Origin: Octopus sinensis
Lineage: Eukaryota
Direction: 5' to 3'
Assembly (NCBI RefSeq): GCF_006345805.1
Contig: NC_043018.1
Location: 5,518,001-5,582,000, forward strand
Length of the DNA: 64,000 bases
The position numbers and the translations under genes were made by a program. Below are positions 39,781-63,150 of this stretch, one piece after another. Each line of letters opens with the position of its first letter. Within the stretch, counting starts at the first letter, position 1. Below the pieces are notes generated by a model, which was not told the origin of the DNA, made no database searches, and saw only the letters and a program-made list of their open reading frames with translations.

Positions 39781-39942
39781 TCAGAAATGAATTTCATTAA
39801 AGACATAACAGACTTTCTTGATGGCATCATCTATGTCTTCTTCGTTTATATTACAGCAAATTGCAAACCGAATATCTTTACCTAAAAGCTTACAACCCAC
39901 ACGGATTTCCTTACCCAGCTCCTTCACTTCAGCTTCAGTGGT
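39781..39942 (-). CDS. Threonine aldolase-like copy B, last exon (TTEAEVKELGKEIRVGCKLLGKDIRFAICCNINEEDIDDAIKKVCYVFNEIHF*)
   Basis: taaacag acceptor, 162 nt ending in TGA. IRF...DID.AI corresponds to the family VRFVTH.D...DI C-terminal segment. Confidence 0.88.
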   Translation of the reverse strand, partial: TTEAEVKELGKEIRVGCKLLGKDIRFAICCNINEEDIDDAIKKVCYVFNEIHF

Positions 39943-40935
39943 CTGTTTAAAAATAAGAAAATAAAATAAACAAGATAAAAAACGAAGTAAATGAATTAAA
40001 CAAAAATCAAAAGAAGTATTCTATAAAATAAAACTTGCCAGAAATTTACATTATAAGGACTTAGAAACGGTGAGAGATATGCAGACAATTGTTTTTTATA
40101 GTGGAATTTGAAGCAGATTCGAGGCAGTATGACTTCACACGACAATGCTGCTCGTAGACTGATGCCTGAGGATTACATCAAGTGGTTTCTAGTGGCAGAA
40201 ACCTGAAATACAATGACCTTATCTCATAGAGAACGTTTCTGGTTACTTTTGGGTACCTCCTCATAAAGCTATTAATAATCTCTTCTATAAGCACTTGGTC
40301 TGAAATTTTGAGAGAGGAGACAAGTAGATAATATTGTCCTAATCCTAGTGAGGTTGCTATGTAGCTTGCAAGACTAAGAACCCCAAGAGGTAACATTATA
40401 CTTGGATATGGGGAGCGGGGGGAGGAGTTGGATAAAAATATGAAAGAAGGGGCCAGAGAAGAACAGATTTCTTGCTTAGGATGAACTACAATTAGAGGTA
40501 TGTATAAATAAATAATAAATAAATAAATAAATGCCCCCTTTTAAAGCCTAGCCAGATTCATGGACCCAGTTTCCCGGTTTCTGTGGCGTATGTGTTCCCC
40601 AGCTGGACACGGGACTCCAGTCCATTGCAGAGTTACTCATTTTTGCCAGCTGAGTGGACTGGAGCAACGTGAAAGGAAGTGTTTTGCTCAAGAACACAAC
40701 GCGTCACCCGGTCCAGGAATCGAAACCACAATCTTACGATCATGCTGCTGGCACCCTAACCACTAAGCCACGCGCCTCCACATAGAGGTATGTATACATT
40801 AATATATGTACATTATACACCAGGTTATTAGTTTCCCCTAATAGTTTTCTGTCTTTATGAATATGTTATTTAAACTTGTGGCTTTAATTTCTTTAGAATG
40901 AAATGGATAAATAAATTAGAGATATACTTTCGTAC

Positions 40936-41060
40936 CATCATTAAACGTTCTTTTAAGTTAGTGATGAAAGACATTTCTTTATTGATTTTAATAAGAATAA
41001 GATTAGTTTGGACTTCCTCTGGTTCTATTGTCACCACTGAAGAAGAAAGATTTTTCAGAC
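40936..41060 (-). CDS. Threonine aldolase-like copy B, exon 8 (GLKNLSSSVVTIEPEEVQTNLILIKINKEMSFITNLKERLMM)
   Basis: V.TN motif; 125 nt, phase 1-0; tttcag/GTACG boundaries. Confidence 0.88.
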
Positions 41061-41166
41061 CTGAAACCAACAAAAATGAGAAACAATTCACGAATTAAAA
41101 TTAAATAAAAACTAATTCTTAATTAATAATAAATCTCTGAACGAGGTATAAACAGTAACTGCACGA

Positions 41167-41417
41167 CAATGTGAGGGATATTTGCTATCTCAATATGGCT
41201 AACCACTAAGGGTGGGTGTTACTGTAGCTTGTAGCCCCAGGAGAACATCGTTTCCAGCTGGCTTTAGGCACACTTTCTGTTCCCTAAGGTATTTGCAAAG
41301 GGTACAGAAAGTGTGCCTAAAGCCAGCTGGAGACGATGATCTCCTGGGGCTACAAGCTACAGTAACACCCACCCTTAGTGGTTAGCCATATTGAGATGGC
41401 AAATATCCCTCACATTG
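41167..41417. repeat. 251-bp near-perfect hairpin in copy B intron 7
   Basis: Arms of about 115 bp with few mismatches and a loop of about 20 nt. Confidence 0.9.
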
Positions 41418-42090
41418 ATTCTTAATTAAGTAATAAAAATAATTGAAATAATTAATGAAATAAATCAACCATTTAACTTTCAGATTACTTAATCAAAAGT
41501 AATGCTTATTTATTCACATTGTTTTGGATTAACCATGGAATATCTTGTAGGTTTGGGATTTTGATGAGGTGATTGTCTAGTTTTAGAATGATGCTGTAGG
41601 TTTGATATGAGAGGCAAGATCTGGCCAGCTCTTGCATAAAACAGGTGGATTATCTGGGCTGGATATGACTGGTTTATCCCTTTAGCATTCAGATTATCCT
41701 ATCAAATGTAATGTTTATTAATCTCCATCGTTTTGAATTAATCAAGCATTATAGTGTAAGTTAAAGATTTCACTGATGTGACCAAGCCAGACATCCATGC
41801 CTTATCATTCAATTGGGACACCCTGGTGGGGAAAGTTTACATTGGTCTGTGGCCAGCTGCTTGGCTTCGCTGGTTGGAGGATATCCTGATGACCAGTAAA
41901 CCATTGCAGTTGACGAAATCTACATCGTGATTACTTTTGAAAAATATTGATTTCAAATTTTGGCACAAGTCCAGCAATTCTGATGGAGCGAGGTAAGTCA
42001 ATGACACACATCCCCAGCACTCCAAAGGGATGAAAGACAAAATTAATCTTTGCAGAATTTGAAATCAAAACATAAAGACAAATGAAATGC

Positions 42091-42546
42091 TGCTAACGAT
42101 TTTGCCTGGCACCTAACGATCTTGCTTCGCATGCTAATGATCTCACCTTGCATGCTAACGATCTTGCCTTGCATGTTAACGATCTTGACTTGCATGCTAA
42201 CGATCTTGCCTCGCATGCTAATGATCTTGCCTTTCATGTTTATGATCTTGCCTTGCATGCTAACGATCTTGCCTCGCATGCTAATGATCTTGCCTCACTT
42301 GCTAATGATCTTGCCTTGCATGCTAACGATCTTGCTTTGCATGCTAAAGATCTTGCCTCACATGCTAATGATCTTGCCTCACATGCTAATGATCTTGCCT
42401 CGCATGTTAACGATCTTGACTCACATGCTAATGATCTTGCCTCGCATGCTAACGATCTTGCCTCGCATGCTAACGATCCTGCCTTGCATGCTAATGATCT
42501 TGCCTTGCCTGCTAACGATCTTGCCTCGCATGCTAACGATCTTGCC
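42091..42546 (+). repeat. 21-bp minisatellite (TGCTAACGATCTTGCCTCGCA), about 22 copies
   Basis: Direct periodicity; it expands the 3' tail of the preceding SINE-like element. Confidence 0.93.
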
Positions 42547-61500: not shown

Positions 61501-61579
61501 TATGCATTCTCTCACCAGTTCAAATTGTCCACCTCACAGCAAAGAGACACACACACAAAATCCTGCAGCATGCTTCTAA

Positions 61580-61956
61580 TTACCTCCACCAAGGAAGGAA
61601 GTTATGTTTCCATCAGCATTGACTTGTCCATCTGTGTGCAAAATAACTCAAAAAGTTGTGAACGGTATTTAAAGAAATTTACAGGAAAAGTTGTTAATGA
61701 CACAAGGAACAGATGATGAAATTTTGGTAGTGATCCGAGAAATTTTATGGATTCTTGAAGGGTTTTTCATTTGTTATATTTACTTTACATGAAGTATTAC
61801 AATGTTAAATTCTTTGATTATCTCTCTTGAAAACACGTTCATCGTTTCCACATAAACTATGGTGGCGTTACTGTTTCCAAAGTTTATTTTCGTTTCTCTA
61901 TTAGTAATTTTACTCGTGTATCTATCTTAAAATGAGCTGCTTGGCGGAGGTCTGCG
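61580..61956 (+). mobile_element. Helentron-associated (HINE/DINE-1-like) non-autonomous element
   Basis: Subterminal inverted repeats CCTCCACCAAG / CTTGGCGGAGG, followed by GAAGTTATGTTT near the 5' end. Confidence 0.55.
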
Positions 61957-61974
61957 GAGGATGGCATGACAAGC

Positions 61975-62440
61975 CTTGACTATTGGGATTGACTCAAAAA
62001 GCTCATGCTTTGCTCCCTCCACTGCCACTGTGAGCTCTATATCATCTGTATGATGTGGAAAATGTTCCATCAATATTGCCCATCTTTAAAATTCGTCCGA
62101 GGCTTGGCCCCGTGCCCTCCATCCACTACAGAAATGTTTGTGTCGTATCACAACACTATGACAGAACTATTTCACCTCAATTGGCCCTGCTCTCTTCAAC
62201 ATTGTGCCAAACACACATAAAAGAGGGAAGTGACTTCACGGCATTCAAACGATCCCTAGATGATTACCCCCAACAAATACCAGATAAACCACCCACACCC
62301 AGATATGTCTCTGAAAACAATAACCCTCTGCTTGAATGGGCTTCGGTTCCCCAGAGCTGACTGTGTATCTCTTCCAGGCGGTGCTATTAAATTAGACATG
62401 GCCTGAGTCAACTTCGGCCGAAATTTATCTAAGTAATCTA
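61975..62440 (+). mobile_element. Degraded 3' end of a CR1/L2-group LINE
   Basis: Frameshifted SL.C..E.YII..MWK...FKRSLDDY.QQIPDKP.TP.Y....N.LLEW, typical of the ORF2 C-terminus. Confidence 0.72.
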
Positions 62441-62967
62441 ATCTATGCTGTAACCTTTTAATCAAAGCATGACAACGCGGGTAGAGGCTGATATCTTAAC
62501 ATTTCTGATGGTCTTAAGTATAAAAAGAATTATTAAAGATTTATATAGAACTACATTCAGAGTATGTCTATAAGCTATTGTGTTTAGACCTGGTTTCTAT
62601 CCTCAAACTGTTCCGTTTTGTAGATGCAATTTTTTTCGTTTTTAATAAAGCACTTCGAGATTAGAAAAATCAAAAATCTGCAATAATCTCAGTCCCATGA
62701 GTATCGGATAATGGATTTTCAACTGTGTAAAGAAACTGATTGTGGTGATCGTAGTTTTGATGGTGATTGTGGTGAAAGCAGATACAGTGTTGATGATGAC
62801 GATGGCCGAGATAAGTATGGGAGGAGGTCATGTTTTTGTCGGCGTTTGTTTGGGATGATGATGATGATGATGATGATGATGATGATGTTGATGATAACAG
62901 TAGAGTCCAAGTTCATTTCAGTGAAAATAAAGGTTAAGTAAAAGAAAATCACAAAACACTTTCTTAC

Positions 62968-63150
62968 CTTTTGTAAATAGTCCAAAGGTAAAATTTTCCC
63001 TCCACATCTATTATGAGTATTTTCTAGGCAGATAACTTTGGTTCTACATATATCATTCGCCACTGATGTTGATATTGTCTCGGCTAATGTGGTTAAATCG
63101 TAAGTTCCATCTTTTAGAGTGGGGACGATTCTTGGAAAAACTCCAGCCAA
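62968..63150 (-). CDS. Threonine aldolase-like copy B, exon 4 (LAGVFPRIVP...LENTHNRCGGKILPLDYLQK); upstream exons lie off the right edge
   Basis: Same length (183 nt) and phase as copy A exon 4; 42/61 aa identical; tcacag/GTAAG boundaries. Confidence 0.95.

Follow-up and report, generated by a model that had tools for sequence, protein, structure and literature searches.

An intact octopod threonine aldolase paralog altered in the active-site elements that subunits of its family lend to one another

Two threonine aldolase genes, copies A and B, lie on the stretch of the Octopus sinensis genome analysed here (CM016880.1:5518001-5582000, 64,000 nucleotides, hereafter the window), and they raise the question of whether copy B is an ordinary duplicate, a decaying one, or an enzyme altered at the residues that subunits of this family supply to one another. 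Copy B is a 9-exon, 360-aa gene recorded as XP_029649359.1, "probable low-specificity L-threonine aldolase 2". A preliminary description had given it six in-frame exons with canonical splice sites and no stop; this holds for the part within the window, where all six exons are open on the minus strand with AG acceptors and GT donors and the final exon closes with TGA, but these are only exons 4-9 of the nine, exons 1-3 lying beyond the window at the window-equivalent positions 64001-66346. Splicing the six in-window exons yields 266 aa with 100% identity to residues 95-360 of the record, and every ORF of at least 180 aa elsewhere in the window is a simple-repeat translation. The in-window exons are as follows.

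62968..63150, minus strand: copy B exon 4, residues 95-155, with the loop SVANDICRTK (Asp127 codon 63054-63052) and the conserved ENTHN motif
58408..58545, minus strand: copy B exon 5, residues 156-201, with HVDGAR (Asp166 and Arg169 equivalents, Arg codon 58494-58492) and CLNK, which holds the PLP Schiff-base Lys201 (= Lys197, codon 58410-58408) and in which Ser196 is Asn
56616..56671, minus strand: copy B exon 6, 18 residues and a split Arg codon
43185..43321, minus strand: copy B exon 7, the remodelled motif lent to neighbouring subunits, CRAALGGDVFKLGIEAAA, with Lys222 to Ala226 (43305-43303), Gly227 to Asp231, Met228 to Val232, Arg229 to Phe233 (43284-43282) and Gln230 to Lys234
40936..41060, minus strand: copy B exon 8, residues 266-307
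39781..39942, minus strand: copy B exon 9 and stop codon, with Arg332 (= Arg308, codon 39870-39868) in DIRFAICCN

The family membership of copy B is evident from several comparisons. It scores 260 bits against Pfam PF01212 (Beta_elim_lyase; cut-off 27) over profile positions 1-285 of 288, and its AlphaFold2 monomer model (mean pLDDT 94, pTM 0.92) has mouse Tha1 as its best Foldseek match (8pum_A, TM 0.95, rmsd 1.4 A), followed by the threonine aldolases of T. maritima, A. jandaei and E. coli. With the NCBIfam LtaE equivalog NF007825 (cut-off 312) copy B falls below threshold at 242 bits, the A-type gene of O. bimaculoides scoring 313, although this is only moderate evidence of divergence since the profile was built for bacteria. 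With NF041359 (GntG subfamily, cut-off 230) copy B scores 324 bits, but the A-type protein scores higher still (419), so this match reflects general family membership and does not discriminate between the two types. Copy B is thus a real, intact gene of the threonine-aldolase family (LtaE/GLY1/Tha1, PF01212, fold-type I PLP enzymes). Homologs were collected by an exhaustive representative search; a word-indexed search with 108 aa of copy B matched two metagenomic fragments only and missed copy B's own record, and no transcript-derived (Logan) copy was seen in the protein collection. Searches of the literature turned up no work on threonine aldolase in octopus or cephalopods and none citing the gene or protein accessions.

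Residue equivalences were taken from HMMER alignments of copy B to E. coli LtaE (3wlx) and mouse Tha1 (8pum), and E. coli numbering is used throughout. The earlier hand alignment had three residues retained and three residues donated by neighbours replaced, and the profile alignment agrees at all six positions: Arg169, Lys197 and Arg308 correspond to R173, K201 and R332 (the last, in DIRF, lining up with the mouse Arg), whereas His126, Lys222 and Arg229 are Asp127, Ala226 and Phe233. None of the lost residues is restored by this alignment, and as the loop SVANDICRTK contains no histidine at all, a one-residue shift cannot rescue His126. The retained same-subunit set extends to Lys197 (Schiff base), Asp166, Arg169, Thr59, His83 (stacking), Glu88, the ENTHN motif, Ser6, Asp7 and Arg308, the Arg5 that precedes Ser6 and Asp7 having become Ser. 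Five residues (Gly26-Tyr30) of the conserved N-terminal GDDV(Y/L) loop are missing, the lent motif RK-x-x-GGGMRQ reads RAALGGDVFK, and Gly58 of the phosphate loop is Ala, Ser196 is Asn and Phe87 is Ser. In terms of what characterizes the LtaE/GLY1/Tha1 group, copy B has the Schiff-base Lys197, Asp166, Arg169, Thr59 and His83 and the carboxylate binders Arg308 and Ser6; it lacks the adjacent-subunit PLP ligands Lys222 and Arg229 (PMC11016064) and the second active-site histidine, His126.

The assignment of residues to the lending subunit is taken from the literature, the structure model here being a monomer. In mouse Tha1, the adjacent unit supplies Lys267 and Arg274, both of which touch PLP (PMC11016064); in T. 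maritima a different subunit contributes His125, and three monomers together form the site of the E. coli enzyme (PMC6411801). In low-specificity L-threonine aldolases, His126 positions both the hydroxyl group of the substrate and the catalytic water (roles of His126 and Lys222 per PMC6411801, PMC4761611 and PMC11016064). On this published assignment (PMC11016064, PMC6411801), the earlier statement that all neighbour-donated residues are replaced is borne out for His126, Lys222 and Arg229. The loop that is deleted in copy B includes, in E. coli LtaE, Tyr30, which would be contributed by the partner subunit. As read from these alignments, copy B keeps its own-subunit half of the putative active site whole, and every element listed as lent to neighbours is deleted or replaced.

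Such changes are rare in the family. In a background set of 284 threonine aldolases, position 222 carries Lys in 95% of the sequences, position 229 Arg in 97% and position 126 His in 79%, a degree of conservation that argues against chance variation in copy B, and its combined losses (the five-residue loop deletion, G58A, S196N, and those of His126, Lys222, Gly227, Arg229 and Gln230) fall at positions that are 79-99% conserved in these homologs. The molluscs Mercenaria, Physella and Pomacea are canonical at the positions in question, so that the substitutions are not shared with other molluscs. Two details of the preliminary description need amendment. The sequence RKMTGGGMRQ ascribed to copy A is in fact that of E. 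coli, copy A's matching exon not being in the window; and while copy B does have AIC (DIRFAICCN) in place of the C-terminal VTH, canonical cephalopod copies already have VTN there, which makes this change less telling.

Copy A is represented in the window by six exons.

21864..21987, minus strand: copy A exon 1, ATG at 21987, with the full N-terminal loop that is deleted in copy B
20896..20979, minus strand: copy A exon 2, PSGTMANL, with Gly58 and Thr59 intact
18391..18479, minus strand: copy A exon 3, His83 in GDQAH
15385..15567, minus strand: copy A exon 4, SNAHHCKTK, with His126 kept
3796..3933, minus strand: copy A exon 5, DGAR and the PLP lysine in CFSK
1483..1538, minus strand: copy A exon 6, the last recognisable exon
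912..1011, no strand: assembly gap of 100 N, ~470 bp downstream of copy A exon 6

Over the three exons shared in the window, copy B is 67%, 65% and 70% identical to copy A, close to the 70% estimated earlier. Exons 7-9 of copy A were not found in the window, in the 8.6 kb past its left edge (L001), in L002 or in the unplaced scaffold L012, nor was the CSN8-like gene that neighbours it in O. bimaculoides found downstream of the O. sinensis copy. Synteny with O. bimaculoides stops ~75 bp downstream of exon 6, and the RefSeq model (XP_029649358.2) runs into the intron past that exon and ends at 237 aa. Copy A thus appears truncated in this assembly, and the 100-N gap may conceal why its last three exons are missing.

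Copy B belongs to an octopod-specific clade of B-type genes that is sister to the canonical A-type gene. There are three full-length B-type copies in O. sinensis, three in tandem in O. bimaculoides (two broken by assembly gaps) and two full-length in Argonauta; in Octopus the B-type genes are tandemly arrayed upstream of the A-type gene, and in Argonauta 22 Mb separate A and B. The A orthologs adjoin a CSN8-like gene in O. bimaculoides and Argonauta. The O. bimaculoides analysis relied on the longest isoform, P0388, with P0384 as the A ortholog, since no gene is on record for isoform X3 (P0165). Support is 100% for the octopod A+B clade, 92.5% for the A clade, 100% for copy B with its O. bimaculoides ortholog (ObiB) and 62% for the B clade, which is backed by the common five-residue deletion, S196N and the loss of His126. 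In the site table, which includes the 284 homologs, all eight B-type copies lack the N-terminal loop residues and His126, and Ser196 and Gly227 are also changed; the same-subunit residues checked are invariant in all of the eight that cover them. Other positions vary, Arg229 being replaced by F, N, P, H or S or kept as R, and Lys222 being Ala only in copy B and ObiB. Because position 126 is Asp in copy B and Gly in ObiB, Asp127 is best regarded as a released position and not as a new catalytic residue; together with the variable Arg229, this suggests relaxed constraint at both positions and not design. ObiB, the positional ortholog, is intact except for a 10-N assembly gap and has an identical RAALGGDVFK, which argues against errors of assembly or annotation as the origin of the substitutions, a possibility we reject.

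Of the 11 B-stem substitutions that could be polarised, four lie in a span of nine residues (226-234), and comparison of copy B with ObiB yields five synonymous and no replacement differences in the 27 codons of the derived motif; the changes in the motif thus arose clustered on the stem lineage of B and have since been kept by purifying selection. For the whole gene, dN is 0.039 and dS 0.19, an omega of 0.20 (bootstrap 0.14-0.37; binomial P=1e-9), with intron identity of 83-93% as a comparable neutral yardstick; neutrality, which the preliminary description had named as fatal to its case, is rejected. NG86 estimates of dS exceeding about 1.5, which arise between Octopus and Argonauta and in comparisons with the outgroup transcript, reflect saturation and were kept out of ratios. 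Between copies B and C, exons 1 and 7, which carry the lent elements, evolve fastest (pN 0.18 and 0.20, the other exons ranging from 0.02 to 0.13), and exon 9, with Arg308, is the most conserved exon among B-type copies (pN 0.016, pS 0.16). Gene conversion was considered for this near-identical last exon and is ruled out by its pS of 0.16.

Copy B is therefore intact and selectively maintained, not decaying. The view of copy B as a redundant duplicate in the course of pseudogenization might be argued from the unconstrained equivalents of positions 126 and 229, from the C-terminal frameshift in copy D, and from the omega values of 0.64-0.71 for sister copies C and D, which are not significantly below 1 and suggest that part of the B-type family may be drifting. 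But the nine-exon ORF of copy B with its canonical splice sites, its O. bimaculoides counterpart, intact save for the 10-N gap, the constraint just described, and the persistence of open B-type copies in three species whose between-genus dS is saturated render this a highly improbable reading that is already disfavoured.

Purifying selection on the whole protein would equally be expected of a non-catalytic pseudoenzyme whose fold persists for structural, binding or regulatory purposes, with no turnover, and the loss of both neighbour-derived cationic PLP ligands, along with G58A in the phosphate loop (PMC11016064), points the same way. Yet none of the eight B-type copies departs from the Schiff-base lysine, the Asp directed at ring N1, the stacking His, Arg169, Thr59, Ser6 or Arg308, even across the saturated Octopus-Argonauta divergence. 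Pseudoenzymes usually lose catalytic or cofactor residues, and we regard this explanation as very doubtful.

Retention of every residue essential for chemistry would be natural were copy B an essentially ordinary threonine (or hydroxy-trimethyllysine, HTML) aldolase with tolerated substitutions, serving as extra dosage or as a tissue-specific isozyme. The E. coli single mutants give this some weight, H126N/F having a kcat equal to or above wild type and K222A retaining ~10% activity (PMC6411801, PMC4761611), so that the functional change in copy B could be small; sporadic substitutions at these positions also occur elsewhere in the family (Planococcus, Cololabis, metagenomic sequences). We nevertheless consider it unlikely, as the losses in copy B are combined, fall at highly conserved positions and are clustered on the B stem, and the LtaE equivalog score falls well short of the A-type value.

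Copy B is probably an altered enzyme and not a dying copy. The explanation we prefer, at about even chances, is that it is a maintained, remodelled aldolase-type PLP enzyme, neo- or sub-functionalised and not a simple duplicate. Such a protein would still fold and most likely still bind PLP; its neighbour-completed pocket, having lost the hydroxyl-orienting His along with two cationic PLP/phosphate ligands and gained Asp231, Phe233 and Lys234, would differ in its preference for substrate or stereochemistry and hold the cofactor less firmly. It may act as a homo-tetramer or in mixed tetramers, and a new substrate or reaction, or heteromer formation, is a possible outcome.

Heteromer formation has a stricter version, in which copy B is an obligate hetero-oligomer subunit or modulator whose partner, a paralog with the loop, Lys222 and Arg229 (A-type or the B-type copy D), completes B's pocket, while B in turn would disable or retune the pocket that it completes in the partner. 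The strict asymmetry between conserved same-subunit residues and changed lent elements speaks for it, as do the tandem position of the genes, the RKALGGEMRQ retained by copy D, and the rapid divergence of exons 1 and 7, which is expected if paralogs differ in lending. Purifying selection on the derived motif, however, fits a used surface better than a discarded one, the proposed partner copy A seems to be incomplete in this assembly (237 aa), and the two genes are far apart in Argonauta; we judge the obligate arrangement unlikely. A broader and rather improbable idea is that octopod B-types are interchangeable subunits, with working same-subunit half-sites and diversified lent parts (the exon-1 loop and the exon-7 motif), whose mixed tetramers would give combinatorial PLP sites. 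If so, substrate preference or activity would be set by the adjacent paralog, a natural neighbour-subunit tuning of enzymes by gene duplication.

The threonine-aldolase family is already known, and what is new here is the remodelled variant that copy B represents. Threonine aldolases are biocatalysts whose stereo-selectivity is engineered at positions altered here (His126, residue 87 and the Arg229 region), and copy B, as a naturally selected variant with the whole neighbour-supplied set rebuilt, offers a ready-made test of the roles of those residues. It illustrates asymmetric divergence of oligomeric enzymes after duplication, the own half-site being conserved and the lent half released. The octopod-specific expansion, like the possible truncation of the canonical copy in one species, is relevant to cephalopod threonine, glycine and carnitine metabolism, and the B-type proteins are named "probable low-specificity L-threonine aldolase 2" without the missing key residues being flagged.

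Among characterized enzymes, copy B is closest to mouse Tha1 (8PUM), its best PDB match in sequence (E=4e-79, ~39% identity) and in structure, with the same fold. Animal Tha1 is an efficient hydroxy-trimethyllysine aldolase of carnitine synthesis (PMC11016064). Equivalents of the mouse own-subunit residues Lys242, Asp211, Arg214, Thr98 and His123 are all present, whereas copy B has Ala and Phe at the Lys267 and Arg274 positions and lacks the His126-loop histidine, five N-terminal loop residues and the extension before the first conserved motif, where the mouse mitochondrial signal lies. With E. coli LtaE (3WLX/4LNJ) it aligns over residues 6-296 (E=2e-61), sharing Ser6, Thr59, His83, Asp166, Arg169 and Lys197 and differing at His126 (Asp), Lys222 (Ala), Arg229 (Phe), Gly58 (Ala), Phe87 (Ser) and the deleted Gly26-Tyr30. 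The A-type proteins (O. bimaculoides XP_014777251, Argonauta GAB1607620 and copy A) are 66-70% identical to copy B, have the same 9-exon structure and intron phases and are encoded by adjacent genes in the Octopus genome, but unlike copy B they retain the loop, His126, Ser196, Lys222, Gly227, Arg229 and Gln230. For no known member of the GntG family (NF041359) or of the diverged threonine-aldolase relatives did the comparison made here show copy B's combined loss of lent residues. The use of a threonine-aldolase scaffold for other substrates or reactions has precedents in the Candida HTML-aldolase paralog of GLY1 (PMC11016064) and the fungal alanine racemase (PMC6411801).

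The window falls at positions 5518001-5582000 of the Octopus sinensis chromosome record CM016880.1 and carries two copies of a threonine aldolase gene, A and B, both on the minus strand. The preliminary description of copy B as six in-frame exons with canonical splicing is borne out: the borders are AG/GT, no stop or frameshift interrupts the reading frame, and the last exon ends in TGA.

Exons of copy B in the window
63150-62968, minus strand, exon 4, AG/GT borders, open
58545-58408, minus strand, exon 5, AG/GT borders, open
56671-56616, minus strand, exon 6, AG/GT borders, open
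43321-43185, minus strand, exon 7, AG/GT borders, open
41060-40936, minus strand, exon 8, AG/GT borders, open
39942-39781, minus strand, exon 9, open, terminates in TGA

When 1.84 billion representatives were searched exhaustively with HMMER, the 266 residues encoded in the window matched part of a 360-aa protein at 100% identity (P0003; XP_029649359.1/XP_036368105.1, annotated 'probable low-specificity L-threonine aldolase 2 [Octopus sinensis]'), and the window therefore carries exons 4-9 of a nine-exon gene. Exons 1-3, just past window position 64000, were recovered from an O. sinensis locus (L002) that also holds a further paralog, copy C, and translation of the rebuilt coding sequence gives P0003 exactly.

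Residue equivalences were read from HMMER alignments of copy B to the solved structures of mouse Tha1 (8pum, E=4e-79), E. coli LtaE (3wlx, E=2e-61) and the T. maritima enzyme (1jg8), with E. coli numbering taken from the tool output. Copy B retains Ser6, Asp7, Thr59, His83, Glu88, ENTHN, Asp166, Arg169 (DGAR), Lys197 (CLNK) and Arg308 (DIRF); the last two and Arg169 had been picked out by hand as kept, and the replacements noted with them also hold in these alignments (His126 to Asp127, Lys222 to Ala226, Arg229 to Phe233). Gly227 is changed to Asp231, Met228 to Val232 and Gln230 to Lys234, and there are further substitutions of Gly58 by Ala, Ser196 by Asn and Phe87 by Ser. The GDDVYGDDP loop, encoded outside the part first described, has lost five residues (Gly26-Tyr30). 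One reading needs correction, as the sequence RKMTGGGMRQ attributed to copy A is that of E. coli. Across the 284 further family members aligned with copy B, position 222 holds Lys in 271, position 229 Arg in 275, position 230 Gln in 283, position 196 Ser in 277, positions 27 and 28 Asp in 269, and position 126 His in 223. Other molluscs are canonical and do not share the substitutions of copy B.

The literature agrees that the replaced residues come from neighbouring subunits. Mouse Tha1 binds PLP through Asp211, Arg214 and Thr98 from within the same unit, together with Lys267 and Arg274 of the adjacent one (PMC11016064); the E. coli active site draws on residues of three monomers, and T. maritima His125 is supplied by another subunit (PMC6411801). 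Copy B has the whole of its own half-site, and everything that one of its subunits lends to other sites is deleted or replaced. That copy B serves as an obligate partner within mixed tetramers is a reading we keep in view as somewhat unlikely. As a counterweight, the E. coli H126N/F mutants are unimpaired and the K222A mutant still has roughly one tenth of the activity (PMC6411801, PMC4761611). That copy B is essentially an ordinary isozyme is an alternative we hold to be unlikely.

The AlphaFold2 model of copy B is confident (mean pLDDT 94) and fits mouse Tha1 with a TM score of 0.95; its lowest-confidence blocks, residues 21-40, 121-130 and 221-240, are the remodelled segments. Copy B scores above the Pfam PF01212 cut-off and, like the O. 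bimaculoides A-type, passes the broader GntG-family model; on the NCBIfam LtaE equivalog model it reaches 242 bits, below the cut-off of 312 that this A-type just exceeds at 313. A non-catalytic role for copy B appears very unlikely, and we infer, with about even confidence, that it is still a PLP-binding, aldolase-type enzyme with a changed pocket.

A-to-I RNA editing is common in cephalopods. The Asp231 codon of copy B is GAT at window 43290-43288, and from the codons editing could change GAU to GGU, giving the canonical Gly227, and would be unable to bring back Lys222 (GCA) or Arg229 (UUU).

Searches with copy A and full-length copy B, followed by cluster and contig look-ups, place copies C (XP_036368104), B and A in that order along the direction of transcription in O. 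sinensis, with a fourth copy, D (XP_029655666.2), on the unplaced scaffold VCDQ01004223.1.

Further O. sinensis paralogs
L002 10001-25341, copy C, directly upstream of B; B-type, Pro at Arg229
L012 10001-21024 (VCDQ01004223.1), copy D; B-type, Lys222 and Arg229 both kept (RKALGGEMRQ), C-terminal tail frameshifted

In O. bimaculoides three B-type copies come first, then the canonical A ortholog at full length (XP_014777251, 365 aa), then a CSN8-like gene. RefSeq treats the three B-type genes of this tandem array as a single locus, LOC106874140 (L009 10001-43444), whose isoforms X1-X6 are chimeras mixing exons of more than one copy, some exons apparently being hidden by assembly gaps. The genuine ortholog of copy B, ObiB, is not annotated as such; it lies at L009 34876-43441 and has a 10-N gap within exon 5. 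The Argonauta hians A ortholog adjoins the same CSN8-like gene, and two tandem B-type genes lie on the same contig 22 Mb away. At the A. hians locus of GAB1607791.1 (L010 1700-6939), annotated at 266 aa, a complete gene of nine exons and 362 aa can be modelled, open throughout and canonically spliced. In a bootstrapped neighbour-joining tree, octopod A+B, the Octopus B-types and OsiB (copy B) with ObiB each receive 100% and the A clade 92.5%; a canonical cephalopod transcript from Logan assemblies (SRR27666058 and four other runs) is the outgroup to the A and B clades. The B clade including Argonauta has 62%, but its members also have uncommon changes in common: the deletion of 5 aa, S196N, an acidic or amide residue in place of Gly227, and His126 loss. 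Tree and changes together place the A/B duplication before Octopus and Argonauta diverged, a distance over which dS has reached saturation.

The assembly gives the canonical paralog, copy A, only exons 1-6, and its RefSeq products of 237 aa (XP_029649358.2) and 191 aa both run into intron 6. The stretch where its end would be expected covers window 1-1540 and L001 30546-40545, an O. sinensis locus reaching beyond the left edge. About 75 bp past exon 6 the collinearity with O. bimaculoides breaks off.

912-1011, 100-N assembly gap after copy A exon 6

A-type exons 7-9 and the CSN8-like gene were found neither in the 9.5 kb after the gap (to L001 40545, mostly beyond the left edge) nor among the other O. 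sinensis loci examined. The missing end may mean that the gene is truly truncated, that a large insertion has displaced the exons or that the assembly is at fault. O. sinensis may have no canonical threonine aldolase of full length, or the break at copy A may lie in the assembly.

A satellite of about 9 kb (window 5480-14342; units of 184-207 bp; GC skew strongly positive, 0.21-0.26) fills copy A intron 4, whose O. bimaculoides ortholog is only about 200 bp. Copy B intron 6 (13 kb) holds a 2-kb degenerate GT-rich microsatellite (46971-48985, GC skew up to 0.65) and intron 7 a 21-bp minisatellite of about 22 copies (42091-42546); long spurious ORFs arise from both. The introns of A and B also carry many copies of a roughly 400-bp SINE-like element, 85-90% identical to one another.

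SINE-like copies in the window
63394-63790, 45664-45858, 56903-57068
1656-2038, 2554-2931, 4153-4525, 20330-20717

The dN/dS comparison proposed in the preliminary description, in which a value near 1 would count against its reading, gives omega 0.20 for OsiB against ObiB over 346 codons (dN 0.039, dS 0.19; bootstrap 0.14-0.37; ML 0.21). With 31 replacement and 39 silent differences over N:S sites of 809:229, neutrality is rejected (P=1e-9; P=1e-8 for the exons in the window); intron identity is 83-93%. Omega is 0.35 for the A orthologs over exons 1-6, and 0.64-0.71, not significantly below 1, for copy C against copy D. Between B and C, pN is highest in exons 1 and 7 (0.18 and 0.20), and exon 9, around Arg308, is under strong constraint (pN 0.016 at pS 0.16). 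Gene conversion as a source of the exon 9 likeness is ruled out by that pS. Copy B is intact, old, conserved as an ortholog and under purifying selection, and we give hardly any credence to its being a decaying copy.

Eight B-type copies were compared, sites being scored only where covered since two O. bimaculoides copies, Obi1 and Obi2, are incomplete. The same-subunit catalytic residues are invariant in all eight wherever covered, and the loop and His126 are absent from every copy covering these sites. At the Arg229 position the residues are F, N, R, P, H, S, F, F, and at position 126 they are N, N, G, D, Y, G, G, D; this variability argues that the two positions were released and not newly designed. 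Lys222 to Ala, Met228 to Val and Gln230 to Lys occur only in copy B and ObiB, whose motif is identical (CRAALGGDVFKLGIEAAAALCGLERPE). Of the 11 substitutions that parsimony places on the B stem, 4 lie inside residues 226-234, and the derived 27-codon motif has since gathered 5 silent and 0 replacement differences between OsiB and ObiB. A single lineage rebuilt the Lys222-Gln230 motif, which has stayed frozen ever since, and its conservation argues that this surface is in use. The preliminary interpretation of a re-engineered enzyme is supported in part: it gains from the intact gene and its purifying selection and is weakened at positions 126 and 229. The underlying observation is confirmed and extended.

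We found no literature on cephalopod threonine aldolase genes and no characterised family example with similar substitutions. Elsewhere such substitutions are sporadic in uncharacterised members, often alongside His126 loss, and family-wide, a protein without Lys222 or without Arg229 is usually without His126 too, as in the UniRef protein A0A1B0FQQ8, several metagenomic sequences and those of Planococcus citri and Cololabis saira. This co-loss hints that positions 126, 222 and 229 are functionally coupled and recurrently lost, and the remodelling may be a recurrent theme.
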